DNA from: Oopsacas minuta
Lineage: Eukaryota > Animalia > Porifera
NCBI GenBank assembly: GCA_024704765.1
Contig: JAKMXF010000033.1
Coordinates: 620,001-684,000 of the forward strand
Direction: 5' to 3'
DNA length: 64,000 nt
In this document: one piece after another, positions 39,979 through 60,350 of the stretch
Layout: each line of letters starts with the position of its first letter
Position numbering within the stretch: the stretch's first letter is position 1
The notes under the pieces: generated by a model
The model's input: only the letters and a program-made list of their open reading frames with translations
Database searches by the model: none
What the model was told of the DNA's origin: nothing
Made by a program: the position numbers and the translations under genes

Positions 39979-42900
39979 ATGTCTATCCTCTTTCTACACG
40001 AATTCGTAAAAATATCTTTTAGTATACTTTATTCTCTGTGAGTAATGGCAATTATAGCATTTTGACAATTATTATTATTCTTTATTGTTTTATTATATTA
40101 ATGTACAGCCCATGTCAAGATTATACCGGTTCATAAGCCTGCTTCCCAGGCCTTCCCAACAGTTGTCCCTTCGCCTGCCTACGTCACGCGCCTTCTCTGG
40201 CATCATTCCTAAGGTAGCTGGAATCAACAAGAGTAAACAGGTGGTGGAGGATTATGACAAATATGTAGCACAAAACTATACTCCTCTGAAAGACGTAGTG
40301 ATAGCTAGAGGAGAAGGTGTGTATGTATATGATATAGAGGGAAGACGTTATTATGATTTTTTGACTGGATACAGTGCTATGAACCAAGGACATCGACATC
40401 CTAAGATCCTAGCTGCTCTCAAAGAACAGGCTGATAGACTCACACTAACAGGTCGGTGTTATTACAATGACATGTTGGGGAAATATGCTAAATACGCTAC
40501 AGAGCTGCTAGGCTATGACAGACTACTCCCTATGAATGGAGGAGTGGAGGCTTCAGAGAGCTCTATCAAGATGTCTAGAAGATGGGGCTATGAGGTAAGC
40601 AATCTTATAATGCTTATACATATTTTGGGAAATGTCACACTACAGTATTTCACACCTTATTATCCGAGTCAATCGATCAACAGAATACACGAATCGGATA
40701 ATTGATTGGCTGAGTTGGATGATTGAATGAGAAATACACTGTAGACTGTGCAATCTTGTATCCAATGAAAGATTATAATACAGTTCAGTAGCTGGGTTCG
40801 ATAAATCAGACTCAATGGACCGCGATAATTACTCCGATATAATGATAAAATTTCTGTTGCTTTGAAGGTTTGGGACCATATTTGTACAATTACAGACTTC
40901 GATATAACTTTGTTCTATATAATGGGAGTTGACCGTATGTATCTAGTATAAATACTACACAACTAGCTAAATAAGTTTTATTTTTCTCTCCTCTCAGGTG
41001 AAAGGAGTACCAGACAATGAAGCTAAAGTTATTCTCTGTCGCGGCAACTTCTGGGGAAGGAGCATTGCTGCTGCTAGCTCTAGTACTGACCCTTCCTGTT
41101 TCATGGGGTATGGCCCATTCGTTCCCGGATTTGAACTTATACCATTTAACGATATTCCAGCCCTAGAGCATGCTCTCAAGGACCAGCATGTTGTAGCATT
41201 CATGGTAGAGCCGATACAAGGAGAAGCTGGTATTATTGTACCGGACAAGGGATATCTGAGTAAAGCTAGAGAGCTGTGTACTAAGAATAATGTACTGCTT
41301 ATCTGTGATGAAATACAGTGTGGATTAGGAAGGTAAGATTGTATTACTTATACAAGGGAATGGTAAAAATTTTAGATCATTTGGGAAATCATTTCTAATT
41401 CTGTAATAAATCTGGATATTTTGGGTAGATTCATAGGGTGATGAGTGTACACGAGAGGAGCCTCTCTATCTCTATTTATGTATGTCTGTTAATCCTATAG
41501 ATCTGGTAAGATGCTAGCTAGCGAGTATGAATCAGTACGTCCAGACATATTAGTGCTAGGTAAAGCTCTATCTGGTGGATTTATGCCTATATCAGCAGTA
41601 CTAGCAGATGACCAGTATATGTCTATGATGAAGTCTGGCACACACGGTTCTACATTCGGAGGTAACCCTCTTGCATCAGCACTAGCCATCGCTTCTCTTA
41701 GAGCTATCGTAGAAGGAGGTATGTGTGAAAACGCGTACAAGATGGGTGAGATATTCCGCAAAGAAGCAGCTACGTTTAGGCGCGATATAATCAGAGATGT
41801 AAGAGGAATGGGACTATTCAATGCTATTGAATTAAACCCCAATTGTGGAGTAAGTGCTAGTACAGTTAATGAGAAGCTACGTGATCATGGTATACTATCT
41901 AAATCTACTCATGAGTATACGTTCAGGATGGCACCAGCTCTTACGATTAACGAGGAACAGCTGATGGATGCTCTATCTCTCATGAAGAAAGCATTAGAAG
42001 AATGTTAAGCTAGTTTAATACAGACTAATGATTCCCATTACTACTCGCTACAGATTATCAGATTATTTCTACTCTTTATTATTCCGTCCTTATTCTAATT
42101 ATTTCATATATTTGTATTGAAATACATTAATCTCTGTTTATTGTCAATAGTATTCCGAATCTAGTCTAGTCTCTATTTAGCAGATACTCAATTTGGACGG
42201 TTACGCCAGAGAGCGAGATTTTTTAAGAGGTGGGAATGTCAAGTCCAACGGCTCCCAACCTGAGGTCTAGGGACCATTGGTGGTCCACGGTAGACAGCAA
42301 GGGGTCAAGAGGATCTGAAAATTTATATTGCTGTATGGAATGGCTCAACAGATTGTGTTATAATTGGTATATGAGACCCATGAGCCAACAAAGTTGGGAA
42401 AGCTGTGTCACCCCAGTCAATAAACATTTATGGTAAAATTAACTGCACCGAATTGAGTGGTTCCTGAAAATACAACATACACCTATAAAGAATGTTACTA
42501 TTTATAGTAACTTCATTTAATTTAAAATCCATTATTAATATTTCATCATTACTAAAACAGTTAGCTAATGTTTCATTTAACAAGATTACAGAACTCTCCA
42601 CGCTGGGAACCTAATCTTAAATCTCTTACTGCTTTAACAGCTGATAATATATTCTACATCAGCTCTGTAACAGGAGCTACAGACTATCTAGCTGTATCTC
42701 TCAGTACTCACTCAAAGTAAGATCTCAAACATGGTTTCCCTATACCAGCGCTTTCTAACCTTTATCACTCGTGGATCATGGATCCCCTATATTAATTTTA
42801 ACACATTCTGTGGCTCCCTCCCATAGACAAATTTTGAGATCCTGTTGACCCCTCTGTCGTCAGTGGACCACCAAGAGGTCCATGGACCCTAGGCTGGGAA

Positions 42901-45900
42901 CCACTGGCTTATTCTAATCCAATTAAGAGACTACTAATTTGGTTAAGATACACATAACTAGACATTCGTGAAAAAGAACCGCTAATTATTTAGTGTCATT
43001 AGCTAATCTTGATTTAATCCCTATCTTCTCCAGTTCTGTTACCAATTCATCTTCCTGATGCATTTTGAATAATATATCCATACCTCCAAGTAACTCTCCA
43101 TTGAAGAATATTTGAGGTATTGTAGGCCAGCTGGTGTATTCCTTAACTCCCTGTCTTAACGAGTTATCTTCTAGCACATTGATGCTAGAGAACTGTACAC
43201 CGTGTATTTGTAATATCTGTACTACAGCCTTACTGAATCCGCACATAGGACGCTCGGGTGTGCCTTTCATGAATACAACAACTTTATCACTGTTTATTAG
43301 TGTACGAATTTGTGTATTTACTTCACTATCTTCCTCCGTTGTATCTGAGTATAATCTCCTCTGAGGTATAGCCATAGGGAGGGTGTAAGGTATTGAGTAA
43401 TATAGTGATGTAGATATATAGCGTGTTGTTATGACAGGATGTAGTGTAGATATTGTGATTAACTTCCGTAGGTTTAGTACTTTCTTATAAGCCATTTCTA
43501 TTGAAATTATAATATCTATAAATTGCTACAGTTATCTCCCGTTATATCGAACACGGATATATAGACATTCCCGGTTATTTCGAAGTCTGAATTTATATAC
43601 ATATGATCCCAAACCATATTTATACCATTTAAGAGTACCATAAACTTCTTTGGTTATATCGAACTCCGCTTATAATTATCGCGGTCCCTTGAGCTTCTAT
43701 ATAACGGAAGTTGACTGTATAAGAAAGTATTTTAGTTATACGTATATGTTGTTTGTAGAGTCAAGTGTCGAGTAGTAATTCTGAGTATATCACATCCAGA
43801 GACGAGTTTAGAAGATGCTACTCTCCTACTCTACACTTCATCTCCTATCATATTTAGCTCTACACGTAACTCTACTGGATTACTGGTCAGTTTATTGTAT
43901 ATTATTAATATTAGATAATCATACAATCTCTCATAATTATCACACTATAACCCAAAATATTAACATTTTCAGGAAACGAAATAATATAAAAAGCCAAAGA
44001 CAAACTATTTACAATCTAAAATTCTAAAAATAATTAATCCTACTTGCTCTTAGCAACCAAGTTATTCCATAATATGTATGCAAGATTATTTGTTTTTGTA
44101 GAATTCTTCCTTGACCTGTATTAACACACCATCCGTGAACACTACATCAATAGCAGTATGAGCCATAGCTATGCCAGCTATAAGAGTAATTTCATGTGAT
44201 TCTATGGTATTAGACGCTAGATTGAATTCAGTAGTGTGGTTAACTGAGGTTGTATTGAGAGCATATGTTGGGTGTATGCTAGGAACCTCGTAGGAGACAT
44301 TACCCATGTCTGTTGAGAAACTAGACTGTGCCTTATCGGTCTCTATGTCAGGATACGTCATGCCCAACTCCATAGAATTGTTACGATAGATCTCAGCTAA
44401 TATTGAATTTGTTCTCATATCGAAATATGGGATATCACTCTTATTAATAACTACTGTACAACCAGTAGCTGTAGCTCCTGCCTATACAATTAATATGTAA
44501 ATATAACACTGAATTTCTCATATTGCTGATAAACTAATCTTACATTAAAACATCCCTCTAGTTTATCCATCAGCTGTTCCAGTTCAGCGTTATTAGGTGC
44601 TCTAATCATATAACTGAGCACTGCTCTATCAGGTATAACATTAGGTTTTAATCCTCCGTCCGTGAATACTCCATGAGCTCTCCATGTAGGTTTAAATTGC
44701 TGTCGCATCATAGAGACAGCAGAGTATGCATTAACTGCAGCATCCAATGCATTAACTCCCTCCCATGGATATGCTGCTGCATGTGCTGGCTTACCCGTGT
44801 ATGTAATTTCCATACCGTTTAAGCTTAATACATTTGGGTATATTGCGTTAAAATTAGCAGGATGTACCATAATAGCAAAATCTATACCCTTGAATGCTTC
44901 TTTACTTAACATCTTTATCTTACCGCCACCTCCTTCCTCCCCCGGGGTACCTATAACAAAATATTTATATCACTATTTATGCTATAATCAATCGGTTTAC
45001 ATCTCCGAAACGATAAATTTTATCGTTTCGTTCGATATTTCTAAAGATAGGAAAAAATACCGGGAAAATCTCGCGAAAATACCGAAAAATATCTAAATAT
45101 CTAAATAAAAAAATGTAATATATTATCGATATTTTTCATGTCTCACCCATAACAGTTAGCTTAAGTTTAACATCTGGGAATATTTCAATCACTGCTTTAA
45201 TCCCAATAGCAGCTGCTAATCCTGCTTCAGCTATGAGATTATGTCCACATCCATGCTCTACTCCAGGTAGTGCATCATATTCACATATTACGCAGGCGTT
45301 AACATCTGGTTCATCACTCTGAGTATAGTATATAGCTTTGAATGCTGTCGGAAGGATGTATGACCTTTCAACTTTGAACCCTTCTGCCTGTAAGAAATCT
45401 GTGAGTATAGCATGAGCCTTTACTTCCTCCATCATAAGTTCTGGGTGTTTCCATATCTGTTGACTAGCCTCTCTCAACTTATCTCTAGCTCTCTCTCTAT
45501 AGCTCCTGTTATTATAGATTTGGCATCTGTTATCTTCGCTTCATTGCTTTTCGGCTTTTCATTTTCTGGTATCTTTTGGCTCATATCTGCTTCTTGAATA
45601 ACTGATGTACAAAATACTTATTAACATAGTAACGAACGGTTTAATTCAATTGTAGTACGCTTGGCTTGCTAAGACGTTTCCCGACGTAAACAAGTACCCA
45701 ATATTCGGCATTTCGTGCCTCGAGTAGTGAAATAGTAGGACGTGGGTTCCAACCTGGAGTCCACGGGTGAATAAGGTTGGGAACAGCTGTTACGGAATAT
45801 AGTAATATATGTTATACGATTAGTCATCCATTCTAGAATTTATACAACATAGTATAGTAAGTAACACAGTATATTTTACGAATCTTTGTCCAGTCCCGAG

Positions 45901-48900
45901 GAGGCAGGAGACTCGTCTTGTACATCTCCTATCTTCTTACCATCCATCTTCTGTTCCAATAGAGAATGCATTAGTCGCTCATTCGTCAGCGGAGAATGTA
46001 CTGGAGAAGCCGATTCAGGCTCTATGTCTGTGAGAATCTCAGGTTGATCAAAACTAGGAGCATCAGATAGGAATTTATTCAAATCATCATCTCTTGCTAC
46101 ATCTCCCTCTATCTCCACCTCTCCCAGCTGTTTGTCATACTCAGAGGATCCTTGGAACTTCCTATCCACCATCCCTGGTCTTAATGTGCCATACTCTTTG
46201 TATTGTAACATCTGTTGTTGGAACGATTCCGCTAAAAATCTCTGTTTCTGAGCTAAACTCTCCATACGCTGGCGCTCACTGGTTTCTCGTTGTACGTCTC
46301 TCACAACTTTCAGTTTCACGTCCATTTGCTTTAGTTCTTCTTGTCTTGTCTGTTTGTAGACAGAGAACCGACGAAACTCTTCCATTTTAGCTCGCGACAT
46401 CTGTACCTGTGCATTCAAGAGGTCTAGCTCTATCAGACGGAAATTTATCGAACTAATCTCATCAGAGATAGTTGATAAATCTGTTCTTATCTTATCTACC
46501 ATCTGTACTGTTTCAAGTATAGCTTGTAATTCCTTGTGAAACCCATTGTATACTTTCCAACTTTTCTTCGCTTGTTTGTTTACCCTAGCTATCACACGAC
46601 CTAGTCGGTCACCCTCTCCAGCTGATTTCACTGCTCTCTTCCTTATTTCTGCTAAGTTTGCTGCATTCCAAGCCACCAATTCGTAACCAACTCTTGGCGT
46701 GTATATTGCTGCAACTTCTGATGTATCTTCTTGCCCTGGAGCTTCAGCTGTTCTCTTCTTCACGAAGTTAGTAGCGAATTTACGCATCGTGCTCACCTCC
46801 CTGCTGAGCTCCTCTTGAAGAGAGTGAGAAGCATTTGAGAGAGTTTGCCAGGGACGAGGCCAAGAGCCAGACATTCTCTACTATAAACGAATAAACCAGC
46901 GAATATATGAATGTATTTTTATTATAAAGATCACAAAAACCACTTACTTACATAATTGTTCTCAATTATATTATGTAAGATAGCGTGTTTATAATTATGG
47001 CAAATGGATATATGTGCCTCATTATCCTATCCATTTCTATTGGCAATTACTATACTACTTGTTTAGACAGTTGGTGATAAAGTGAATGATTTTAGGGACT
47101 ATCTTGTGTGAATTATTTCATCCATTGTCACTCTACTCGTATTTTAACTCAATGAATCCATGTACTATACTTTCAGGTTAATACATGATTTTGTGATCAC
47201 CGTATGTATTCTTAATTCACGTAACCGTACGTGACCTTACGTATAAGCTCCGCCCCTTTTATTTCTGTAAGAATTTAGAGATAAATAACAAATTTATCTA
47301 GAATACCAGGGCCATAGGAAGCGGTGCAGTCACTTTGGATTCACTACACCGGGCCTGACTACAGTCATGGAACATAATCAACATGGGATTTTCTAACCAG
47401 CAACCCGTGATCCGCTTCACCAAATAAGGTTACTGCATGGTGTAATATTTCAATATAGCAACCTACTCAATTCATCATCAATTATTGCAACCATCCAATA
47501 TACTTATTATACATTTATTGAATAACTATTTGTGGTAACATTCAGCAACTTATGAGTACAATTTATTATGTGAATCCTATAATTAATTGTTCTTCCATCA
47601 GAAACAATACCACTATAATGAATTATGTACAAGATGGTTTCTTATGGTGCAACCATCATATCCTATGATTAGATCTTGACAGCTTAGATACCACATTAGT
47701 ATGTAGTAACAAGGCTTTGCTATTATCCCAAGGTTTCACGTGCACATAGCTATCTATCTTTCAGCTACCGACTCAAGATAACACATTATGATTATTGCAC
47801 GCTGAATGGGAGATGTCTTATAACAACACTGCTATGATCTCTGCTGAATTCTTTCGGTAGTTATGGTATCGTGATTAGGATCAGACACTAATTCGAATTA
47901 TATTTATTGAACTGAAATTCAAAATTTGACGTTTGAAATGGAGAAAACTATTATTCGTGAAGGTTATGTAAAAGTTGGTAAAATAGTTGGCAGAAACATG
48001 AAACGTAAATATTTACGTTTGAAATGTGCATCAACAAACACAATACTAGCTCATATTGAGTATTATGATGATGAAAAGCAATCCAAAAAGAAGAATACTC
48101 CGAATAAAGTTATTCCTATGCGTTCTATCGCAGGGGTACACAAGATAGAAACCAATTCCCCGTTAAAATCCCCCTCAATGGTTCCTTATCATATCAAACT
48201 AGAACTTGTTAAAGACAAGGATAAACTGCACGATATTTATTTCGAAATTGATCCAAAGGATAATTTTGACGATTGGGTGAGTGACCTAGAATTCCTAGTA
48301 CGTCTCCCTGAGCTAAAGATTCCGATTAGTCATATCCCCTTATATGACTGCAGGAGTCCATTTGATCTGAGTATTGTAGAACGAGAAGGGTTTGAAGATG
48401 CATGTCCAGTTTATATCATCAAGAAGGAGTTGGGAGGAAGTTCTTACTTCGAACAGCCGAATGTAATTCTAGCTCTCAAGAAGAATGTTATTCTATTCCT
48501 TGACATGCAGACAGGTTCTCAGCTGTTAGCATTTGATATACAATTCCTACGGAGATGTGGTAACTGGCAACAGCTAATATTCGTAGAAGCAGGTCGTAAG
48601 TCTGTCACTGGGGAAGGATATCTATGGATGTACGTGGAATGTGTAACACTCGCTAAATACTTATACTCCAGTATGTCTAGTATAATGGGTAGTGCTGGTA
48701 ACAAACGGATGGAGCGTAATCTAACATGGAAACAGTACTGTAGCGAATTGTATATGAAATCTAATAACATCAAATCCTCAAATAACTCTCTACCCAATTC
48801 GTTGCCAAGCTGTCAAGAACCTTTCTATATGAACAATGACGTCAGAAGACATCACTCGCTTGTTGACGCGAACAAGCAAGCAGGTTCTAGACTGAGTGAA

Positions 48901-50027
48901 GAGGGGGTATTCTTCTCTGAGACAGGGGTGTTGGATGTTCGTAGCTCCGCATTCACAGACAGAACCTCATACGCATCCTGGTCCTCGGTAATGACACAGG
49001 AGTCCAATTTATCTGTCAGTAGTGATATGTCTAATCCAGATACTAGATATAAATCTGCTACGTTAGATAGGAAGGGGTTTAGGTTCGGAAAGAGACAGTC
49101 CCGTAGCTCTAAGGAGAGCAAATATTTCAGAGTAGGTAACTCTAAGTTCTATAACGGAAACTCATTAACTGATGCTATTCTAGATGCTCCCCTCCCAGTT
49201 TCTACTCCTATCTACCAGGCCCCGTCTAACCTCCCTATTCCCCCTCCCCTTTATCAGACACTCCCTTCTAATCGTGCTAGAGCTACTCTATTCTCAGACA
49301 AACAGTATAACTTATACAAACTAGTTTCTAACAACAAAAAAGTAGATTTCTCTCAGTCTCAAGAAACACCTCGTCCTTCTGACATTTATGACCACTTAGA
49401 TTCAAACCAAGACTCTACACCAGTAGCTCATAGCTCTAGACTACGTGCTAACACATGGCCAGATGCACAGTACATTGATTCTAGCCAGGAAGACTCTTAC
49501 ATGAAGATGGCCACCCCTGATATCCCTGTACCCATCTCTAACCCCTTCTCCTATCTCAATGGAATGTCAGCTAAATCTGAGCTACTAAAAATGTCCTCAC
49601 AAGCCTCTCCTAGGGTAAGAGACTTCCTTACAGAGCTACAGGCTAATCAGATTTCAGAGTCAACAGATGAATTATATGAAGTTATGTCTCATCCAGGTTC
49701 TATAGGTGATGACGTCATGAGTTTGAATAGTATGGACTCTAAGCGTAGCAGTTTAAATTCAATACAATCTCAGCCTGTGTTCAATAGTCCAGATTATATG
49801 AATCAGGAATTTGTTATTCAAGCTAATCAAGCTGCTGCATACCTGCAATCTCTTAGTATCAAAGAAAAGGAAGATACACTCAAGAAGAATAAATTAAATT
49901 ATATAACGCTAAAACACGGTTGTGTACCCGTTCAATCTACGAATAATACTAACGAAATGAAGACAGAGTATGACCTGATAGACCATAAGGCTTCTAAAGT
50001 AATGTTTGAAACAGTTATCCACCACAG

Positions 50028-50069
<42 letters not shown>

Positions 50070-53000
50070 TAATAAGGAAGTTAAGAATTAATATATCGAT
50101 ATTATTGTGTGTATATTTCTTATATATTCTTCAGTAAGGATGATTAATTCTGTGTGATGTACATTTCATTATCTTTATACATTTGGAAAATATTATTTGT
50201 TATTGTTTGTAAAGATATACGTGTTTGTTGAAAGTGCATACTTTCAAGTCACGACCTTTTCACTTCCAGGTTCATTATTGCATAGTTGTCAAGTTTCATG
50301 GATTCAAAGTGAAACTCATGTATTGAATCCAATCTCACTTTCATTTTTACTTTCTCACTCAAATTTACAATTTACAATGAATACAGTATTCATAACGAAA
50401 TGAACACTATTAAGCCATTTTGGTGGGTAGATATCCTATTAGCTAAATTCAACTGCTCTTAAACAAATCTCACAGATAGATTTTACAAAGGTTGCCAACT
50501 TTGTTGTTGTACAGTGTAACCTCTACAAACGGGTTGCCAAGGACGCAGAAAAATGTTACCCTGTAACCCCGTTCGTGGAGGTTCATTTATACGGGACTAA
50601 TAATTTGCTTTATTTATTAAGTTCCAGTTTCCACAGGCCTCGTTTTCGGAGGTTTCACTCTATCTCATTTTTACAAAAATTCAAACTTTTTTGCAGGAAT
50701 ATGTTACTTTTTAATAATTCAAGGATCGCGTTATTTCTAGATTATATTCAATAATTAGCTCTATTCATGTCCTACATAGAAGAAGATCAACCTCCAGACA
50801 GTAAAAAATATATTTGTAGCGGACTTAGACATGACCTTCTTGCTTGTATCAAATCATCACCCTGCTATAAAATGGGGATGTCTCCTAAGGAGTGTCTCAA
50901 AACTGCAGGGGACAATCTAGATCCCAAATGTCCACCACTATATTACGCCTTTTTTGAATGTAAGAGATCTTCATTCGATAATCGATCTCGTTTCAGAGGG
51001 AAAAAAGGCTATTAAACTTTGATTTGAAATTTATTATCAGATATACTTACAATATACAATATACATTCATGGCTCTGTGCAGTATTTAATATATTAATAA
51101 TTGTACCAGAAATTACATGAATGTGTTTACCATCAAGGAACTTGTATAATCTCAATGTGTATTGTATGATATCTAGCAATTGTATGAACTAATTTATATG
51201 ATATTTCTCTAGGTTCAAGAGGATGGTAGTTTAGTCTTGTTCGAAGTTAAAGAAGGATTGCCTCAACTTATAACTTACATCAACATCTTATCCAATCCCG
51301 ACAACATAGTTACCAACTTGTGTGTTAGTTATGCTTCTGATTACTTAATTTGGACAGAAGATAGACAGAAGGAATGTCGTTATAACTCTGTGTTATATAG
51401 CTTGAGTATATTAGCTATAGAAGAAGGACAGCCGGGGGGTGGAAGAGATGTAGTTTGTAGCTGCCTTCCTAAGGTAGAGCTATCTGTCAGTGATACAATT
51501 GTCTTAATGATACCAAAGTAAGTATATTATACATTCATATTTTGTTGTAAGGAATTTATTACGATTCAATATTTGTTTTCTATCCTGAAACCTTTGACAG
51601 AGCAAAATTCTTCTGTGGACTTATCTTCCTATACTCTCTGAAAAGAAAACTATTCAAGGTATTATTTCGAAATACATTGTTCATTGAATGATAATCTGTA
51701 TTCAATGAGTGGATAATCTTATTATTCTTACAGATAGTTAATTTGTGTGAAATCGCGAGTTCTAATCTTCAACCCTGGAAAATTGTTCTTTCTGTAAAAT
51801 ATTTCATGTCACAACAATATTCTCTTGAAACAAAGGTAGTATATATTCTCTATGAACCTAGACGCAGAACCGTTTTCTTTCTCTTAACCAATAGAATGAA
51901 GATGCTGCTCTGATGGTATCAACCTCAACTGGTAGTTTGAATACCTCCTTCTATATATTGGATATGAATAGAGTGTTATGGAGATTGATTATTGATGAAA
52001 GAGAGCTTCTCTTCATAGATATAGTGTGTTCAATTGATTTGGCACCATTTGTATCTGATGAAGTGTTACAGATGACATCATTCCAACAGCTGATTTTCAT
52101 TCTAAAAGGGAACAATTTAAGGTAATAACTGACTCTCTACTTTATTTGAATGTTCATATTATTTCATTTACTAATATTTTGCTGCAATATTAACGATCCA
52201 TTTTATCATATAATGCTCATTTACTTGATGTTTTAGTACTCGTACATATTCTACAGGGTCCACGAACTAACCCAAGGAGTATGTGTTCAATCAGATATAC
52301 GTCCAGATGGAGAGTTCTACATCTATACATATCTATTCCACAAATACAAGAAATTAGCTATCAGTACCAAGACCAATGTATACTTAATAGAGGTAGGAGT
52401 TCAACAGTTTATACATACGTGTTCTTATAATAATATAGCGAAAATGTTCACCAATCGTACTAACCGTTTGGATGATAAACCTAGTATGCACCAATTTTTG
52501 AGACATTTGCATTATATCATAAGGTTACTAGAATAGTAGTATATGTAGTCCTAACATGGATAATTATTTGCCCTCTTAATATAGCCCTTAAATTTACTTG
52601 AATTATTATAAATAATCGCTTCTATCAATTTCAATGTACGAAAGGAATCGTAACCCTAGCACTTATTAACCCGTCAAATGTCTGTTTCTCCTGAGTCTGA
52701 TCAAGCTAGTCACTCACTCCGTCTCAGAGAACGACTCATGGCAATCCAACAGAACAGACAGACAGGAAGGATAGCTACACAGTCTAACACAGATCCTGTA
52801 TCTGATGATAACCTGAAGCTACAAACATTCTCTGTGAAATCATGTAGTGAAGTTAATACTGCCATCAGTGAGAAGGAGCTTTGCTACTATCAAGATCAGG
52901 TAGCCAGACTTCAAACTGAAAACAGTCAGCTGAAAAAGGGAATAGGTGAGAAAGACCGCGATTTAAAGAAATCTCAGGAAGCTCTCCAGGCGATCGGAGC

Positions 53001-56000
53001 AGGAGGTGGAGGAGGGAATGTAGCAGCTAAGATTGTAGAGTTAAGTAAGAAAGTAAGAGAGCTACAGTCTGAATTATACACAGAGCAGAGTAGAAGTATG
53101 AAGTTAGAGAGGAATCAAATAGAACTACAAGAGCTAATTAGATTAGGAGAGGGAGAGTTAGATCAGCTGAGAGATCAGCTGGAGAATAAATCTCCCTCAC
53201 TAGAAGAGCTGTCTCCTTCTGATCAGAAGAAATTAGAGTTGATGAGAGAAGAGGTTACGGATTTGAAGGCTCGATTAATGGAAGGCAAGAACTTGAATCA
53301 ATCAATGAAACAAGAGCTTAGACTAACTCAGAAAGCTCTTACGCAAGAGCTAGGCCCTGACGCAGACAAATACACTCTATCTCAGCTTATTAACTCAGAA
53401 GCTGCTTGGAAGGGAAGAGCTCAACAAATTAAACTTTTGAAGAAGAAAGTGAGTGAGTTGAGAGCTCAGCTACAACAAGATACTGTCAGTACAAATTCAC
53501 AACTTGATACAGAGCGTGACGTCAGCTCTGCTGAGAGATTAGACACCTGTGACATGCGAGTAAGCACGAGGCTATACGGTAGTAGTGTATCTAGTCAGAG
53601 CGATAGACAGAGAGAATTGTTGAAGAAGATGGAGACTAGTCGTAAAGAAACAGCTGAGAAGACACAAAATGAACTTGATGAATTGAGGAAAATTCAAACA
53701 GATTATAAACACAAAAATACAGCACTACAAGCTAGGAACCAGACTCTATCACAGGAAGTTAAACAGCTGAGAAGAGATCTAGCAGACAGTAAGTCACGTG
53801 AGATATCTCTAGCTAAACAATCAGCTGATACTGCTACAACATCTGTTAACAAGAATCAAGCTAATATAGAAGGACTGAAGCAAGAATTACATAAGAAATG
53901 TGTACAAATAGAAAATCTCACTCAAGAGATAAGTAACAACAAAGATCATGTAACGCTACCATCTCTGGGAGAATCTATTAAGAGTTCAAAGGTTAGACAG
54001 GTTGTTAGCAAACCTGGTGTATCACTAAACAGAGGTCATCTGACAGATAACGAGCTCCTGGATATAGCTAGGATCAATGGCATGCTACTAAGTGTTAGTG
54101 TAGAGAGAGATAAATTAAGAGAGCTAGTTAGTCTCATGCAAGAGAGATTACAAGAAGCAGTAGAAATAGGGAGTACACAGGAAACTCTGTTAAGACAGAT
54201 GAAACACTCTAATGCTTTGTTAGAAAAAGAAGCATGTAGGGGCGGTAACAGGTCTGGAGCTGTTCTGACAAGTGACAATGATAGCCTCATGCAGAGGATA
54301 AATATATCAGAAGATGAAAATTCAGCTCTGCAACATAGACTCGCTTCCATCAATCAGTCTAGAAAAGAAGATACACGTATGTATAAAGAAATGCTGGATA
54401 CATCGAGGCAAATTTTCACTGATACATTAAATCAGTTAAGATCAGTAGTTGTTGATAGAGAATCTGTTTGATTACCAGACACACACACACTCACAAGTAT
54501 TAAGTATTCAATGTATATGTGTTAATTAGTTATACACTAATCTAATGATTCGTGAACATGCTCATTACTGAATTTACCCATTATTGCTTATGCTATGTAA
54601 TACCCAGCTCACTTCCGTGTGTATTAAATTTATCACTTGTTCCATGTTAAGTTATCCGAATACAGTGAACCTCCACGAATGCTGAACTTACTACCCCGTT
54701 ACCCCATTTGTGGAGGTTTCACTGTAGTTATCTTTTCAGAAAGGATAGAGTAGATAATTAATATACTACTGAAGTATTTATAGCATAAATATCACTATAA
54801 TGCAGTTTATTGATTGCTTCATCATATCTGTCTACATCTTGCTGTATGTATCTATAACCTCTGCAGACCAACGGTGTCCAGGAGTACCAGACGGAGGATT
54901 CTGTCCTTATGATCCCGCTCGTCTTGACGCTATCGTGTGTTGTGATCTAGGATTTGGACCTCATTGCTGTAATAGTACTGAGTTTGAACAAATCAATAAC
55001 GTAAAGTTCTACGTTCTATGGGGTTCAGTAGGATTAGGGCTATTAGCTGGGTTTGTGTTAGTACCTATCTGTGTTGTTTTAATGCATTTCGCTATACAGA
55101 AATGTCCAAATATTTGTGCAAGAGGCAGTAAGAATAGGAGAGCTCATAAATCAAGCGTTATGCCTCCACGACGTCCAGAGCCCTTAGAAGAGAGGTTATA
55201 CGGCCCAGCTGATGATGATGATCCAGTAGAAAGTAGTGAGTATAGTCAAGCTATTGCAAGCAAGACTTCTCCTTTCTACAGAAAATATTCTGAGCTAACT
55301 GATAAGATACATACAATAGAAACTGATCTTCCGTCTGCATCTACTGGTAACGATATAGCCCACTCTAATCTGTTCTATGATACCCAATTGGAAAAGGAAG
55401 AAGCCGATCTGTTGGATAAACAGAGAATGTTGTGGAGGAAGTCTAGTTTCTCTGAGGGGGGACCTTCTAAACTAGCACTCCCTCCTAAATAGATTGCAAC
55501 CCTATCTCTTATTTTAGACATTATTTATTGATTTTGGTACCTAAAACTACATATTTTCTTATTTTTATGATTAAAATTACACTTTTCTAATTCTTAGTAT
55601 GATTGAGTCATATTTTTTCGCAATTTATTTGCCCAATTTGCATACCTTTTATATCTGAATATTCGATTTATATTATTTGTGTGATTGACCCTGTTTCCTA
55701 TTAGAATCTACCATTGAAAGATCAAGTATCTCATTTGCATGCATCTATCCCAGAAGAGAGTAGACTAGCTACACTTGTTAGAACTCCAGACCTTATCAAG
55801 TCTTGGAATAATAACTCTATACAAATGAAGTCTATATTAGATGCTGCTTACTGGATAATTAAGCAGGTGAGATTATTATAAAGTTACATAAAGTCAACTT
55901 CCGTTAAATCGAAGCTCAAAGGACCGCGATAATTCCGTCGATATAACCCGAGTGAATATATGATACTTTGACGGTTTGGGCCCCCGATATAGCGGGAGTT

Positions 56001-59000
56001 AACAGTATATCGTAATTCATATATTTATATATCATTATTAGATGCCAAATGATTGTAATGAGAATACACATAAAGATGAACTCGAATCTCTCTTCACTCA
56101 ACTCAATCATGAAAGAATTGATAATCCTATTATTCTATTCAACTTATTCTCTAGGGTAATAATAGTTTCCGATTTCCTAATAACATTTGGAGTATTGTAT
56201 TAATTTTCAATTATGTAAATAGTTCCCGAAATTTCAAACAGACTTACACAGAGAGCTAAACTTATACGATAATTCTCTCAAAGACATGAAAGAACTCAGG
56301 GACAATATTATTCCTTTCTATTGTAAAGGAGACTTCTCTAAGAAAATATCTACTCTACCTTCACTGATAGCCGAGCAAGATAATATCATGACTAAAAGGA
56401 ATACAATACAAACTGCTAGCATAGCTGATAAAATACAAACACAAGTTGTTAACTACATAAATTCTGTAGTTAATGAATCTGTTACACATGGAATTTGTGC
56501 AGGTTACAAGAAATACAATGCCATATACAGTGGAACCTTGTTAATACGAATTTCAGGAAATTTATAGAAACTCAGGCCCCTACAATGGCTATTCAATTGG
56601 TATTACTCCGGTTAAAGCGAAAACATTTGGCCGTCCGTTAGTGTTCGTATTAACGAAGTTCCACTGTATTTTACAATAGTAAATCTCAAATTTTGATAGT
56701 TTGTATATGTTTATGTAGCTGTATTGTTTACACACACTTCCTGTCCCATGTTTGTAGGTTATTCGTATAAATTTGAGTATCTCTGTCTTGTAAATCCGGA
56801 GGAAGTATTACAATCTATAAAATATTACTTTTCGCAAGGTAACAAATTATCCAGTAGTTATAATTACAATAATTATGTCCTTATGTGTTTACTGTTAGAT
56901 CACAGACATAATCCTATTGAAAAGATTAATTGGAGGAAGTTATTCAATTCTGTAGAACCAGTCCCCTCAACTATTAAGGTACTATTGAGAGTATCTGCTA
57001 TAGCGTCCCTTTGGTTAATAATTTCACCTAGAATTCGAGTAATATTTTGCATTAATATTACGTACTTAATGAAAGTATATAACAACTTATACTCTAGGTG
57101 TCCGAATAAGCCGCCCCCTTCCTGTTTATTCAGACCCCTAGAGTAGTATATGACTGCACATTTCATAATACTTAATTAGCTATTGCTATATTTTAAAATG
57201 GATACTCTACCAGATAATTTACTGAGTCAACTAGTGACCTCACCATCAACAGGAGATAATCTACCCATTAACGATACCACCCCTCAATCTATCAATATAC
57301 TACCTACACCTGTATTCTGTTTGAAAACTAAGCTAAACAATACTAATGATAAGATATTCATAAACGTGTGTACTTCTGATCAGATGAAGAAGCCTCCTGA
57401 CGTCACAGATGAAGAGCTGATTAAAATAATACGTACACAGGATTGCTCTCAATACCGTGTACCTTTATCTCTAGGAGAACCTCGTACTGAGCTTGATCGA
57501 TCACACAATGCATGTGTGGTATATGATGTCATCGTACATAGCTGTCTCTACACCGAATCACAAAAACGACCTATTATGATGGAGTTCTTACTACTGCTAT
57601 TGGTGGAGGGACTAGAAGCTAAATACGATATAGAATTGAATAGAGAAATGAGACGTATGCAGAACATTAAATGCATGGGTACACCCACAGAACACAGGAT
57701 CAGGACGCAGAGCAAGCCTAGGATTGAGATGGAAGAGAATGATGATGTCATCGAATCTAATACTTATTCTCCATTAATAACTGAGGTTAATACTAACACA
57801 CAATCTGTATCATCTCCTATACCGGAGTATACACTGACTAAAGATCCTCCTGATACACATCCTGAATACATAGTGCTAGAGGCTAAACTCCCTCTATTAA
57901 AGAGCAGCAAACATGTAGAATTGAATATAGGAGAAGATAGGATTGTTCTAACTGCACATCCTGACAGGTACCATCTAGACCTGTGTCTACCTTATTACGT
58001 CATACCAGGACAAGTAGGAGCTCAGTTTGATAAGAAGACTAAGCTACTATCTATTACTATGAGTGTGCAGAAATTATAACTATCTCTTATTAAGTGTATC
58101 ATCATTCAATTAAAGTTATTAATCAAATTAGATAAATATACATTCCTCCATAAACGAGGCCTGTGGATTGTGGAAACCGAGCGAAAAATTAATAGACCAA
58201 ATTCCCAGTCTCATACAAATGAACCTCCACAAACAGGAAAATTGGCAGAAACGGGGTAACCGGGGTAGTAATCTTCGGCGTCCCTGTCACCACGTTTGTG
58301 GAGGTCAGACAGTGTAATATGTTATTTCCATTTAGAATAGTTTAATATTATATAATTCTATCCAAATAGGATGGTAGAGATATATTTCCGTCAATATTCG
58401 AGACGGTCTGCCGTTTGGTATTTCAATATGATCCTGAATACTTAGTGAGTTATAAGCAAATATTTATGTAACAACACTACTACTATATACCTTATGTTTA
58501 GATTCCGTTTATAAACAAATGTCAACACCTGTTAGATGTAGATTGCTCTAAAGAACCAGCATTTATGCGTAAGAGTAGTCACGCACAAACCTACCAACGA
58601 GCGCTAGAGAGTCTCCCCGATCTATCCTATCTGCTAAGTGGTAACCAGGAGCTGACAACTTCTAAAGCTATTACGTACTATAAAGTCCTAAATAACAGGT
58701 TATAGGAGGAGCATGAGTATATGTATATTCCATTAATTACGAGTTAATATTATTTGTAGTAAAACACTCAATTCTGGCATTAAATGTATACAAATACTAG
58801 CGGCTGTATCAGAATGGAAGACTGCACTAAATGTACTACAACAATACACACAAAATGTAACTGATTGGATATTTACAAGTTATATGCACAAGATTTACAA
58901 TGTCTCGCTTCTTTAGGACTATCTACATTTCTATCTATTTACCACTCTGTCATATCTGATGAACAAGGTGATAATATTGTATATTATTTATGACCCTCAA

Positions 59001-60350
59001 TAGGCAGCCTGATTCAGAAAGCGTATATATTTCCTTTTAATATTACTTAGGTTGGAGTACTGTCTGATTTCTCTGAAGAACTTTACTTAATGAAAACCAA
59101 TAATTACAGGTAAGCCCATACGTATATACAAGTATAATAAAGATGTAATCTACTTCTTAACCTTCGCGATTTCGAATGAGATCTTTTTTAACATATTATT
59201 TTACACATTTCAGTTTACCTATTCATAGCCATTCAGACCTAATTAGCACTCTCATACTTCTAAATTGTTTATTAGTCGAGAATAATGGCAGAACCCGATG
59301 ACTTGCCCCCTCTGGAAGATTTCTCTCCACTTTTCGAAAAGCTAAGCGCCTCAAATCAAACTAACAGTACCCAGCAGACTGATGCTATTAGTACTATCCC
59401 AAATGTACCATTGGAAAATATCAAGGAAGAAAAACCAAAGACAGATTCATTTGGTGGGTTACGTAAAGGATTTCTGAATCCTAAACCTAAGAAAGAAATT
59501 TCACAAGAAGTAACTATGTTAAAGAGTAATCCTTCAAAAGGTGGAGCTTCTGTTAAAATGGATGAGATGAAGAGAGCTGTTGATGACTCAATGAAAGAAC
59601 AGATATCATTACTACCAGAGAATTGGATGACAGATAGTCTGCTAGACAAGGTAGAGAGTAATCCTATGCTAGCTCAAGCCTTCAGACATCCAGAATTCTC
59701 AAATGTTATAACACGATTCACTCAGAATCCTACTCAAGCTATTCATGACTATGGAGATACACCAGCATTTCGTGAGTTCTTCAAAGAGATGTGTGCTTTA
59801 CTGAGTCAGCACTTCACTCAGCTTGCCGATGAGACAGAAGGTGATGTAGAAGAGGTTCAGATTGAAGATGAGGAGGATAAGAAAATGAGAGAAATATTAT
59901 GTAAAGAGGATGTACAGGAAGCTATGCAAGATCCAAGAATTCGACAGCTGGTCATGGATATGAAACAAAACCCAGAACGTGCACAAAATACCTTTATTAC
60001 TGCATCACCTCAGCTTAAGAGGAAAATATACGTACTCACTAATAATAATATAATTGGCTTACAGAGTAAATAGATACTACCTCTGTATATCACTTCTTTA
60101 TGCTATTGGAATGTACTATCAAAACTTAAGTATTAGTTTTAAAGTCAAAAGTATATTTTTCCGTTTTACAATAATTCGTGAGTTTACTGTATCTGTATAC
60201 TTACTGTGTATGTTATTGTGTAGCGTGGGAGAGCATCTACAGATGTTCAATCAGCTGTCTAACTACCATCCTGACAATCCTACTAATGAAGGTGACAACA
60301 ATGTAGCCCCATTCTTGAAGATACTACTCCGTGAGGATCTGATCCAGTAA
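39979..60350 (+). CDS. HPS6: HPS6-like (BLOC-2 subunit), 18-19 exons, about 790 aa; host of 9-10 nested genes
   Basis: Exons [39979-40037 tentative], 42585-42716, 43759-43885, 51213-51517, 51601-51658, 51734-51835, 51895-52121, 52257-52392, 55705-55866, 56155-56191, 56242-56502, 56758-56838, 56899-56978, 58370-58444, 58502-58698, 58760-58856, 58917-58967, 59051-59109, 60224-60350. All are GT-AG and phase-compatible; total 2373 nt. Colinear with remembered HPS6: GLL|VQEDG vs LVLVWESG; LIWTEDRQ vs LVWCEERQ; [30 protein letters not shown] vs [37 protein letters not shown] vs YRRALAVL; EWKTAL vs QWDRAL. Confidence 0.78.
40112..42008 (+). CDS. OAT: Ornithine aminotransferase, mitochondrial, 3 exons
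   Basis: Exons 40112-40594, 40998-41332, 41501-42008. Motifs [39 protein letters not shown]|[11 protein letters not shown] and [10 protein letters not shown]. Confidence 0.96.
40779..40937. mobile_element. MITE family A in OAT intron 1
   Basis: Core GGACCGCGATAATTAC and right end TAATGGGAGTTGACCGTA. Confidence 0.7.
42245..42407 (+). mobile_element. hAT-type MITE, copy 1
   Basis: CCAACGGCTCCCAACCTGAGGTC ... AAGTTGGGAAAGCTGTG. Confidence 0.7.
42745..42907 (-). mobile_element. hAT-type MITE, copy 2, inverted relative to copy 1
   Basis: Its reverse complement CCAGTGGTTCCCAGCCTAGGGTCCATGGACC...AGGGGTCAACAGGATCTCAAAATTT aligns with copy 1. Confidence 0.75.
42986..43495 (-). CDS. GLRX5: Monothiol glutaredoxin 5, mitochondrial, intronless, nested in an HPS6-like intron
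   Basis: [42 protein letters not shown]. Confidence 0.95.
   Translation of the reverse strand: MAYKKVLNLRKLITISTLHPVITTRYISTSLYYSIPYTLPMAIPQRRLYSDTTEEDSEVNTQIRTLINSDKVVVFMKGTPERPMCGFSKAVVQILQIHGVQFSSINVLEDNSLRQGVKEYTSWPTIPQIFFNGELLGGMDILFKMHQEDELVTELEKIGIKSRLANDTK
43527..43719. mobile_element. MITE family A
   Basis: TACAGTTATCTCCCGTTATATCG ... ATATAACGGAAGTTGACTGTA. Confidence 0.85.
44086..45584 (-). CDS. PM20D2: Peptidase M20 domain-containing 2 (Xaa-Arg dipeptidase-like), 3 exons, with an apparent 2-bp frameshift in exon 1
   Basis: [29 protein letters not shown]|[37 protein letters not shown]...PSIHP. The ATG at 45584 is out of frame with the rest because of a (GA)5 run at 45489-45498. 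Confidence 0.85.
45876..46874 (-). CDS. DTNBP1: Dysbindin (BLOC-1 subunit 8), intronless, nested in an HPS6-like intron
   Basis: [30 protein letters not shown] vs remembered [30 protein letters not shown]; [23 protein letters not shown] vs [23 protein letters not shown]; acidic tail. Confidence 0.8.
   Translation of the reverse strand: MSGSWPRPWQTLSNASHSLQEELSREVSTMRKFATNFVKKRTAEAPGQEDTSEVAAIYTPRVGYELVAWNAANLAEIRKRAVKSAGEGDRLGRVIARVNKQAKKSWKVYNGFHKELQAILETVQMVDKIRTDLSTISDEISSINFRLIELDLLNAQVQMSRAKMEEFRRFSVYKQTRQEELKQMDVKLKVVRDVQRETSERQRMESLAQKQRFLAESFQQQMLQYKEYGTLRPGMVDRKFQGSSEYDKQLGEVEIEGDVARDDDLNKFLSDAPSFDQPEILTDIEPESASPVHSPLTNERLMHSLLEQKMDGKKIGDVQDESPASSGLDKDS
47938..50091 (+). CDS. IRS/DOK-family PH-PTB docking protein, intronless, nested on the same strand
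   Basis: PH domain (IIREGYVKV...FDDWVSDL), IRS-type PTB ([29 protein letters not shown]), tail with YMKM, YEVM and YMN motifs, poly-Asn end. Confidence 0.85.
50029..50067. repeat. (AAT)13 coding microsatellite (poly-Asn)
   Basis: Direct reading at the end of the IRS-like ORF. Confidence 0.9.
50510..50660. mobile_element. MITE (AACCTCCAC/GTGGAGGTT family)
   Basis: TACAGTGTAACCTCTACAAACG ... CGGAGGTTTCACT; related to 54661-54726 and 58140-58316. Confidence 0.6.
50767..51015 (+). CDS. COA5: Cytochrome c oxidase assembly factor 5 (PET191), nested on the same strand
   Basis: Twin CX9C pattern and [23 protein letters not shown]. Confidence 0.93.
   Translation: MSYIEEDQPPDSKKYICSGLRHDLLACIKSSPCYKMGMSPKECLKTAGDNLDPKCPPLYYAFFECKRSSFDNRSRFRGKKGY
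52678..54471 (+). CDS. CCDC13: Coiled-coil domain-containing 13-like, intronless, nested on the same strand
   Basis: [18 protein letters not shown] and [16 protein letters not shown] match remembered CCDC13 motifs. Confidence 0.8.
   Translation: MSVSPESDQASHSLRLRERLMAIQQNRQTGRIATQSNTDPVSDDNLKLQTFSVKSCSEVNTAISEKELCYYQDQVARLQTENSQLKKGIGEKDRDLKKSQEALQAIGAGGGGGNVAAKIVELSKKVRELQSELYTEQSRSMKLERNQIELQELIRLGEGELDQLRDQLENKSPSLEELSPSDQKKLELMREEVTDLKARLMEGKNLNQSMKQELRLTQKALTQELGPDADKYTLSQLINSEAAWKGRAQQIKLLKKKVSELRAQLQQDTVSTNSQLDTERDVSSAERLDTCDMRVSTRLYGSSVSSQSDRQRELLKKMETSRKETAEKTQNELDELRKIQTDYKHKNTALQARNQTLSQEVKQLRRDLADSKSREISLAKQSADTATTSVNKNQANIEGLKQELHKKCVQIENLTQEISNNKDHVTLPSLGESIKSSKVRQVVSKPGVSLNRGHLTDNELLDIARINGMLLSVSVERDKLRELVSLMQERLQEAVEIGSTQETLLRQMKHSNALLEKEACRGGNRSGAVLTSDNDSLMQRINISEDENSALQHRLASINQSRKEDTRMYKEMLDTSRQIFTDTLNQLRSVVVDRESV
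54661..54726. mobile_element. 66-bp MITE
   Basis: TACAGTGAACCTCCACGAAT ... ATTTGTGGAGGTTTCACTGTA. Confidence 0.75.
54800..55492 (+). CDS. Type I membrane protein with a small Cys-rich ectodomain (Shisa/WBP1/VOPP1-like), nested on the same strand
   Basis: Signal peptide; [11 protein letters not shown]...[13 protein letters not shown]; [25 protein letters not shown]; low-complexity tail. Confidence 0.65.
   Translation: MQFIDCFIISVYILLYVSITSADQRCPGVPDGGFCPYDPARLDAIVCCDLGFGPHCCNSTEFEQINNVKFYVLWGSVGLGLLAGFVLVPICVVLMHFAIQKCPNICARGSKNRRAHKSSVMPPRRPEPLEERLYGPADDDDPVESSEYSQAIASKTSPFYRKYSELTDKIHTIETDLPSASTGNDIAHSNLFYDTQLEKEEADLLDKQRMLWRKSSFSEGGPSKLALPPK
55889..56007. mobile_element. MITE family A, internally deleted
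   Basis: AAGTCAACTTCCGTTAAATCGAAGCTCAAAGGACCGCGATAATT ... GATATAGCGGGAGTTAACAGTA. Confidence 0.7.
56526..56668. mobile_element. MITE in an HPS6-like intron
   Basis: TACAGTGGAACCTTGTTAATACGAA ... TTCGTATTAACGAAGTTCCACTGTA, near-perfect 25-bp TIR. Confidence 0.85.
57198..58079 (+). CDS. PIH1D1: PIH1 domain-containing protein 1 (R2TP), intronless, nested on the same strand
   Basis: [37 protein letters not shown]; C-terminal CS-like domain LDLCLPY...[14 protein letters not shown]. Confidence 0.85.
   Translation: MDTLPDNLLSQLVTSPSTGDNLPINDTTPQSINILPTPVFCLKTKLNNTNDKIFINVCTSDQMKKPPDVTDEELIKIIRTQDCSQYRVPLSLGEPRTELDRSHNACVVYDVIVHSCLYTESQKRPIMMEFLLLLLVEGLEAKYDIELNREMRRMQNIKCMGTPTEHRIRTQSKPRIEMEENDDVIESNTYSPLITEVNTNTQSVSSPIPEYTLTKDPPDTHPEYIVLEAKLPLLKSSKHVELNIGEDRIVLTAHPDRYHLDLCLPYYVIPGQVGAQFDKKTKLLSITMSVQKL
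58140..58316. mobile_element. MITE (AACCTCCAC family)
   Basis: CCTCCATAAACGAGGCCTGTGG ... CGTTTGTGGAGGTCAGACAGTGTA. Confidence 0.55.
59285..60073 (+). CDS. Uncharacterised protein with two STI1/DP-type motifs, intronless, nested on the same strand
   Basis: [71 protein letters not shown]. Confidence 0.7.
   Translation: MAEPDDLPPLEDFSPLFEKLSASNQTNSTQQTDAISTIPNVPLENIKEEKPKTDSFGGLRKGFLNPKPKKEISQEVTMLKSNPSKGGASVKMDEMKRAVDDSMKEQISLLPENWMTDSLLDKVESNPMLAQAFRHPEFSNVITRFTQNPTQAIHDYGDTPAFREFFKEMCALLSQHFTQLADETEGDVEEVQIEDEEDKKMREILCKEDVQEAMQDPRIRQLVMDMKQNPERAQNTFITASPQLKRKIYVLTNNNIIGLQSK

Follow-up and report, generated by a model that had tools for sequence, protein, structure and literature searches.

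Organization of the locus

The window analyzed here is a 64,000-nucleotide stretch of the genome of the glass sponge Oopsacas minuta (assembly GCA_024704765.1, contig JAKMXF010000033.1, positions 620,001 to 684,000 of the forward strand), and all coordinates below are counted from its first nucleotide. On the plus strand of this window lies a host gene of 17 exons and 828 codons, which extends over 17.8 kb (42568-60350) and carries other genes in five of its introns. Nine genes are housed in this way, six of them on the same strand as the host and three (a glutaredoxin, an M20-type peptidase and a 332-amino-acid coiled-coil protein) antisense to it. The host is spliced over two of the guest-bearing introns, the guests within them are intact, and the architecture is conserved in other genomes. 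The locus is a striking case of the gene nesting already known from glass sponges, and it presents no new mechanism. The window as a whole has a G+C content of 36 %, with open reading frames (ORFs) dense on both strands, and an Rfam scan of it returned no RNA family.

Four sequencing runs of one study, X1 to X4, contain the DNA of the window. While X1, X2 and X3 behave as DNA, GT..AG joints occur among the four runs in X4 only. Because it is the sole run with such joints, we regard X4 as the RNA-seq library that belongs to this study; its nature is read from this behavior, the record itself giving only '?'. The X4 contigs were compared with one 6-kb stretch, and the RNA joints cover the host from exon 2 to exon 10. 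For the comparison between genomes, seven orthologues of the guest CCDC13, 55-72 % identical, were found in other assemblies, and four orthologous loci (L002, L003, L004 and L005) were compared, each with 10-kb flanks. A further contig, L006, encodes a CCDC13 protein identical to that of L005 and is probably from the same source; it was left out of the counts. Judging from a guest protein identity of 54-85 % and the shared gene order, L002-L005 most likely represent other glass sponges.

The 17-exon model was built by choosing GT/AG sites that keep the reading phase and include the conserved cores. Its exons are as follows.

42568-42716, plus strand: host exon 1, predicted from conservation and phase, which holds the start codon (start plus 49 codons and 2 nucleotides, nt) and lies upstream of the span covered by the initial annotation
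43759-43885 (127 nt), plus strand: host exon 2, matched by an X4 loose end; open frame and AG/GT ends kept in L002-L005 without indels
51213-51517, 51601-51658, 51734-51835, 51895-52121 and 52257-52392, plus strand: host exons 3-7, connected by X4 joints, in a single open frame and conserved in L002-L005
55705-55866, 56042-56155, 56223-~56502 and 56758-56978, plus strand: host exons 8-11, the first three joints from X4 and the later ends predicted from phase, GT/AG and conservation
58370-58444, 58502-58698, 58760-58856, 58917-58967 and 59051-59109, plus strand: host exons 12-16, predicted from conservation and from phases that chain without a stop
60224-60350, plus strand: host exon 17, which is terminal and includes the stop codon; its acceptor matches the phase of exon 16, and the acceptor AG is kept in L002-L005

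The guests lie between these exons.

42986-43495, minus strand: GLRX5-like glutaredoxin in host intron 1 (Pfam Glutaredoxin, E 7.7e-21), also found between exons 1 and 2 in L002 and L005
44086-45477, minus strand: M20-type peptidase in three ORF pieces, host intron 2 (Pfam M20_dimer, E 7.4e-14)
45876-46874, minus strand: 332-amino-acid coiled-coil protein, host intron 2, with copies of 61-73 % identity at the corresponding position of L002-L005
47938-50091, plus strand: IRS-type PTB adaptor (IRS-PTB), intronless, host intron 2 (Pfam IRS, E 3.5e-8), with 65-82 % identical orthologues in place in four genomes
50767-51015, plus strand: COA5/PET191, host intron 2 (Pfam Pet191_N, E 6.5e-20)
52678-54471, plus strand: CCDC13, an intronless gene for a coiled coil of 597 amino acids, host intron 7, with CCDC13-named matches in many animals (E down to 1.7e-26)
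54800-55492, plus strand: Shisa-like single-pass membrane protein of 230 amino acids, host intron 7, with 64-75 % identical orthologues in place
57198-58079, plus strand: PIH1D1, intronless, host intron 11 (Pfam PIH1, E 3.3e-36, and PIH1_CS, E 3.9e-16), with 65-81 % identical orthologues in place
59285-60073, plus strand: STI1-DP protein (STI1), intronless, host intron 16 (Pfam STI1-HOP_DP, E 7.7e-10), with 54-71 % identical orthologues in place

The six plus-strand intronless ORFs on which the initial annotation built its proposal of same-strand nesting are thus present and have relatives, as seen from the ORF list, Pfam and protein matches. Host and guests behave as separate genes: the guests have relatives of their own, and the host exons are 30-94 % identical in the four other genomes (63-94 % for exons 12-16). 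The name of the Shisa-like guest refers to layout only, namely a cysteine-rich N-terminal ectodomain, one hydrophobic segment and a proline-rich tail; against Pfam, with E values up to 10, it matched no family and no Shisa model.

The host itself was initially called HPS6-like. Exon-by-exon Pfam scans with E values up to 10 found neither HPS6 nor HPS6_C, and gave only two weak chance matches on ORF pieces that contain intron sequence. In a protein atlas search the leads for exon 3 were weak and beta-propeller-like, and exon 13 had none; the sole match of a five-genome profile of exon 13 among 1.84 billion proteins was a junk tandem-repeat ORF. By these exon-wise searches, the name is an unverified label. 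Exons 12-14 may resemble the C-terminal part of human HPS6, which is offered as a lead only.

Splicing of the host across its guests

Eight GT..AG joints of the host are found in X4, given here as last donor base/first acceptor base: 43885/51213, 51517/51601, 51658/51734, 51835/51895, 52121/52257, 52392/55705, 55866/56042 and 56155/56223. The first of these comes from an X4 contig whose 27-nt loose end before 51213 corresponds to window positions 43858-43884. It defines a canonical GT..AG intron of 7327 nt, inside which lie IRS-PTB, COA5 and two of the antisense genes. Likewise, the joint 52392/55705 skips 3.3 kb that contain CCDC13 and the Shisa-like gene. These two joints demonstrate that two guest-bearing introns are removed in RNA, and IRS-PTB, COA5, CCDC13, the Shisa-like gene and two antisense genes each lie between two host exons that are joined to one another. 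Furthermore, the host frame is open over the 1230 nt of RNA-joined exons, while the other two frames contain 37-38 stops each. With the joints on one side and intact, conserved guests on the other, the same-strand nesting is real, and the host is spliced over its guests as had been proposed. The host introns around GLRX5, PIH1D1 and STI1 are predicted from reading phase and conservation.

The start of the host lies outside the span in which it was originally sought. Exon 2 has an open frame but contains no ATG in that frame within 43759-43885. The ATG at 43815, formerly a candidate, does not share the frame set by the RNA junction and is missing in L003 and L004; its own frame amounts to a 31-codon upstream ORF that ends at a stop at 51232-51234. 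The true first coding exon is 42568-42716, whose ATG, open frame, phase 2 and GTAAG donor are all kept in L002 and L005. With the start placed at 42568, the GLRX5 gene becomes nested as well.

The acceptors of the host are weak, being mostly bare YAG in AT-rich sequence. As a consequence, a position-weight test of the acceptor-like sites before the guest start codons had no power.

In the public annotation of this region (window 51800-58492, L001), the host does not appear as one gene. COA5 is instead fused with host exons 3-7 (353 amino acids, Pet191_N), and host exons 8-11 are fused with PIH1D1 (637 amino acids, PIH1 domains). The fusion of COA5 to the host was rejected, as X4 contains no joint from COA5 to exon 3. 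From the RNA joints and the conservation, it can be argued that the two chimeric models should be replaced by one host and separate guests.

Conservation of the layout

The interleaving of host exons with IRS-PTB, CCDC13, the Shisa-like gene, PIH1D1 and STI1-DP is identical in L002-L005, in which CCDC13 identity falls to as little as 55 %. Where the orthologous ends could be mapped, in up to four other genomes, AG/GT is kept at exons 2, 3, 7, 8 and 16 and at the exon 17 acceptor. Exon 12 keeps AG/GT in three of four genomes, the mapped acceptor in L002 reading TT; exon 16 is unmatched in L002, and exon 11, which the others carry in split form, is unmapped. The spacers are short in all of the genomes: a guest ATG follows the host donor after 117-396 nt, and the next host exon begins 100-393 nt beyond a guest stop.

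Host intron 2 is more variable in its content. The M20-type peptidase is found only in Oopsacas among the five genomes, a tblastn search against L002-L005 having given no match, and COA5 occupies its position in just three of the five (the window, L004 and L005). At the position in L004 that matches the Oopsacas peptidase lies a MULE transposase with a RING finger (1094-2797). Taken together, these differences indicate that host intron 2 gains and loses genes.

5′ and 3′ ends of the guest genes

The initial annotation drew attention to how little room the same-strand guests leave for promoters, and the distances on which it relied are borne out. From the host donor to the guest ATG there are 285 nt for CCDC13 (GT at 52393), 219 nt for PIH1D1 (GT at 56979) and 175 nt for STI1 (GT at 59110), and from the guest stop to the next host exon there are 197 nt for COA5 (exon at 51213), 212 nt for the Shisa-like gene (55705) and 150 nt for STI1 (60224). 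The shortage of promoter room applies to CCDC13, the Shisa-like gene, PIH1D1 and STI1; it does not extend to IRS-PTB and COA5, which have about 1060 and 675 nt upstream. Nor do short spacers amount to a puzzle: compact signals fit into 100-400 nt, and a promoter may lie partly in host sequence.

At three guests, the X4 contigs point to an RNA 5′ end close to the start codon. Contigs arriving from upstream stop at 50768 (COA5), 52671 (CCDC13) and 54802 (Shisa-like), while the DNA contigs are unbroken at these places. With an overlap of 30 nt, the next X4 contigs begin at 50739, 52642 and 54773, which is on an AG or one base before it and 27-36 nt before the ATG; at COA5, the next contig begins on the AG at 50739-50740. 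Since an assembly graph breaks at a branch and not at a mere start, sequence that is not adjacent in the genome is probably joined at these points.

Before the same start codons, those of PIH1D1 and STI1, and also that of the host, is the motif TAG/C, where the slash marks a candidate acceptor.

42562-42565, plus strand: candidate acceptor before the host ATG
50756-50759, plus strand: candidate acceptor before the COA5 ATG
52657-52660, plus strand: candidate acceptor before the CCDC13 ATG
54781-54784, plus strand: candidate acceptor before the Shisa-like ATG
57177-57180, plus strand: candidate acceptor before the PIH1D1 ATG
59244-59247, plus strand: candidate acceptor before the STI1 ATG

At 6-27 nt before the ATG, TAG/C is conserved in CCDC13 and PIH1D1 (five of five genomes each), COA5 (three of three) and the Shisa-like gene (four of five), and in the host as well. 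Over the five genomes, TAGC occurs within 45 nt of 20 of the 30 start codons, as against about 15 % of random 48-nt windows. The motif is retained in spacers that otherwise cannot be aligned, often as TTAGCT or CCCTAGCAC, and even the most distant genome has the 14-mer AACCCTAGCACTTA unchanged ahead of CCDC13. Such a conserved TAG/C is either a leader acceptor or else an initiator. The three RNA-only breaks and the TAG/C sites are read here as candidate spliced-leader acceptors. Transcript contigs carrying guest 5′ ends were also sought in public assemblies, in which nothing was recorded for COA5, the Shisa-like gene was found only on a genome contig, and the CCDC13 relatives were all on DNA contigs.

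The 3′ end of CCDC13 is marked by another RNA-only break in X4, at 54487, which is 16 nt past the stop codon and within an (AC)6 run (54472-54487). Its position suggests that the CCDC13 mRNA carries about 16 nt beyond the coding sequence. No canonical hexamer is present there at the usual distance, the nearest ATTAAA being 55-60 nt upstream, and after several of the guests AATAAA and ATTAAA are either absent or badly placed. For this reason, no poly(A) sites were assigned from the sequence.

Two unspliced X4 contigs connect these ends with their surroundings. One (52363-52671) begins in host exon 7 and stops 7 nt short of the CCDC13 ATG, and the other (54458-54802) extends from the 3′ end of CCDC13 to the Shisa-like ATG. 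RNA precursors therefore cover the spacers before both guests.

Models for host and guest expression

The locus is probably best explained as an ordinary but extreme example of a glass-sponge nested locus, in which a cis-spliced host surrounds guests that are separately matured and trans-spliced to a leader. The host would be transcribed over its full 17.8 kb, and GT..AG cis-splicing would remove the five guest-bearing introns. Each same-strand guest would be matured as its own mRNA with short untranslated regions. Its 5′ end would most likely arise when a spliced leader is joined in trans to an AG that precedes the ATG by 6-40 nt, on the TAG/C or close to it, a route that the initial annotation did not consider and that appears the likeliest one to the guest 5′ ends here. 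The guest precursor may start anywhere upstream, within host sequence, and a promoter in the spacer of 120-290 nt would be unneeded, because leader trans-splicing would itself set the guest 5′ end. At the other end, cleavage and polyadenylation would take place very near the stop codon, and host mRNA would derive from those transcripts in which pairing of the intron's splice sites precedes any use of the guest poly(A) site. Leader addition at these guests, the origin of their precursors and a competition of splicing with cleavage are inferred.

The competition between splicing and cleavage bears on a difficulty raised initially, that guest poly(A) sites within the host pre-mRNA should truncate the host. 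This need not follow, as intronic poly(A) signals are known to be ignored during intron splicing (Tikhonov et al. 2013, PMC3890989). Of the solutions then put forward, splicing that outcompetes cleavage is consistent with the X4 host joints across guest-bearing introns. The joining of host exons in trans is unsupported, for the junctions are ordinary GT..AG junctions and AG/GT is conserved in five genomes. A host assembled from separate transcripts in this manner, or one that is an artefact of modelling, is close to refuted. The host model is indeed missing from the public annotation, which has the two fusions in its place, and no single contig runs across the whole mRNA. Yet eight canonical GT..AG joints link exon 2 to exon 10, 828 codons can be read in a single frame without a stop, exon order and splice sites have been retained across the five genomes, and the X4 joint that the COA5 fusion would require is absent.

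Several observations weigh against leader trans-splicing of the guests. TTAGCT (Y-T-A-G-C-T) also resembles the animal initiator consensus. All three contig breaks precede their TAG/C sites by 11-20 nt, and a single leader 3′ end cannot account for all of them, as CCDC13 needs ...AAG and the Shisa-like gene excludes A at that place. IRS-PTB has no TAG/C, and that of STI1 is found only at -41 to -59. No leader sequence at these guests is among the X4 loose ends listed. The status of X4 as RNA is deduced from its behavior only, and its contig depth is unfit for ranking host against guests, so that no weight was given to hints from depth of guests far more abundant than the host and of intron 7 RNA at a level similar to that of the spliced junction. 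Lastly, in Aphrocallistes vastus the leader is present on just 4 % of long reads (PMC10282587).

This low frequency would also suit guests that each possess an independent compact promoter, with its own capped start in the spacer, no leader, and the TTAGCT-like motif as an initiator. The likeness of Y-T-A-G-C-T to an initiator and its fixed, short distance to the ATG agree with such an arrangement; spacers of 117-396 nt would suffice for it, and IRS-PTB and COA5 have 675-1060 nt at their disposal. However, a transcription start makes no branch in an assembly graph, yet X4 breaks at an AG before three ATGs where the DNA contigs are continuous, and the unspliced RNA that reaches from host exon 7 almost to the CCDC13 ATG covers sequence upstream of such a start. 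Compact promoters are thus possible, if unlikely. Alternatively, the introns may hold an embedded operon, in which a transcript from the host promoter is either cis-spliced to host mRNA or leader-spliced and polyadenylated into the mRNAs of CCDC13, the Shisa-like gene, PIH1D1 and STI1-DP. The shared orientation, the short spacers, the acceptor-like sites before the guest ATGs and a layout kept in five genomes all fit this arrangement, and the continuous unspliced RNA over 52363-52671 and 54458-54802 is compatible with it without being proof, contigs not being single molecules. Conversely, no single molecule joins host and guest, the antisense guests need promoters of their own, and COA5 is missing from the intron in two of five genomes. 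An X4 contig upstream of COA5 (50400-50768) is, moreover, far thinner than the COA5 contigs, which points to a separate source of COA5 RNA, although depth is a rough guide. We regard the embedded operon as doubtful. A further means of supplying guest 5′ ends would be a shared leader exon of the ChAT/VAChT type, whereby a host exon is cis-spliced to a guest acceptor and the guests serve as alternative terminal exons of the host. Acceptor-like AGs before guest ATGs at branches of the RNA contigs would be expected in that case also, but no joint leads from donor 52392, or from any other donor in the 6-kb stretch, to 52645 or 54775, even though short contigs over host junctions are seen. For donor 43885, the absence of a joint applies to the X4 loose ends listed; here exon 2 ends in ...CTG, which would shift the COA5 break to one base later than the observed one. 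Sharing of a host exon is therefore very improbable.

Comparison with known systems

The compact genome of the hexactinellid A. vastus has about 12 % of its genes (2432) in introns of other genes (Francis et al. 2023, PMC10282587). Many of these nested genes are single-exon genes, their microsynteny is conserved with O. minuta, and the species has a trans-spliced leader of about 37 nt (PMC10282587). The locus described here is one such case of glass-sponge nesting, in which nine guests in a single host of 17.8 kb are far above the average. That study gives counts without mechanism or strand, and lists only 83 nested genes for the O. minuta annotation (PMC10282587), the annotation that divides the present host between chimeric models. 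The O. minuta genome paper (PMC10280926) does not mention nested genes.

Same-strand guests with a working intronic poly(A) site are documented in Drosophila (PMC3890989), in mammalian gene pairs (PMC11694760) and at H13/Mcts2 (PMC13309782), in which the intronic signal is either ignored or interferes so as to give alternative host 3′ ends. Same-strand nesting, described in the initial annotation as generally the rarer kind, is in mammals about as common as opposite-strand nesting (PMC11694760). The Drosophila and mammalian guests have their own promoters, no leader and spacers of kilobases, whereas in this locus the spacers measure 100-400 nt and a leader probably sets the 5′ ends. With the operons of C. 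elegans, Ciona and Oikopleura that are resolved by spliced leaders, it has in common that the genes face one way, that the spacers are short and that an acceptor, here a candidate one, lies immediately ahead of the downstream start codon. Unlike in classical operons, the "cistrons" sit in introns and the host exons are spliced around them, and a polycistronic precursor is here only hypothesized. A further parallel is offered by the cholinergic locus, where intron 1 of ChAT contains the intronless, co-oriented VAChT gene. That arrangement is conserved across species, and VAChT shares the promoter and first exon of its host. The present guests resemble VAChT in being intronless and on the same strand within a host intron, but differ from it in that no host donor was seen joined in cis to a guest acceptor in X4.

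The analysis corrects the public gene models, replacing two chimeras with one 17-exon host and separate guests. It also provides a compact test locus, conserved in five genomes, for the question of how one transcript is divided among cis-splicing, leader trans-splicing and polyadenylation in an animal lineage that branched off early. Should the introns prove to hold an operon, the outputs of host and guests would be coupled and traded off against one another, and this coupling would be the reason why the layout was kept in five genomes. The release of guests from the host transcript, if true, would constitute a new operon-like layout.

Additional features of introns and guest flanks

Three near-perfect palindromes of 80-100 nt, with arms GAACCTCCACAAACGGGGT.../...ACCCCGTTTGTGGAGGTTC, are present at 50505-50600, 54660-54735 and 58212-58318. 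All three copies lie in guest flanks within host introns, and their folding z-scores range from -3.7 to -8.1. The DNA runs show many alternative neighbors for the palindrome, which is therefore dispersed, and its absence from the orthologous loci L002-L005 shows it to be recent. It is a dispersed foldback element resembling a miniature inverted-repeat transposable element (MITE-like); as such an element, absent at orthologous loci, it was rejected as a conserved terminator or processing signal. A second short dispersed repeat occupies 55901-56003 in host intron 8, where many contigs leave the locus on either side. Its summed depth in the DNA runs is 450-630, compared with 75-170 in neighboring bins (mostly 75-115 in X2 and X3, and about 171 in X1).

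Two further observations concern the promoters of antisense guests. The start codon of the glutaredoxin gene, on the minus strand, is 263 nt from the exon 2 acceptor (43496-43758) and only about 43 nt from it in L005 (3695-3737). Given this proximity, the glutaredoxin promoter necessarily shares sequence with host exon 2 or intron 1, and such an overlap may be the reason why exon 2 has been kept without a single indel. In host intron 2, the antisense gene for the 332-amino-acid coiled-coil protein and the IRS-PTB gene diverge head to head from an interval of 1.06 kb, and this interval (46875-47937) looks like a bidirectional promoter region internal to the intron.

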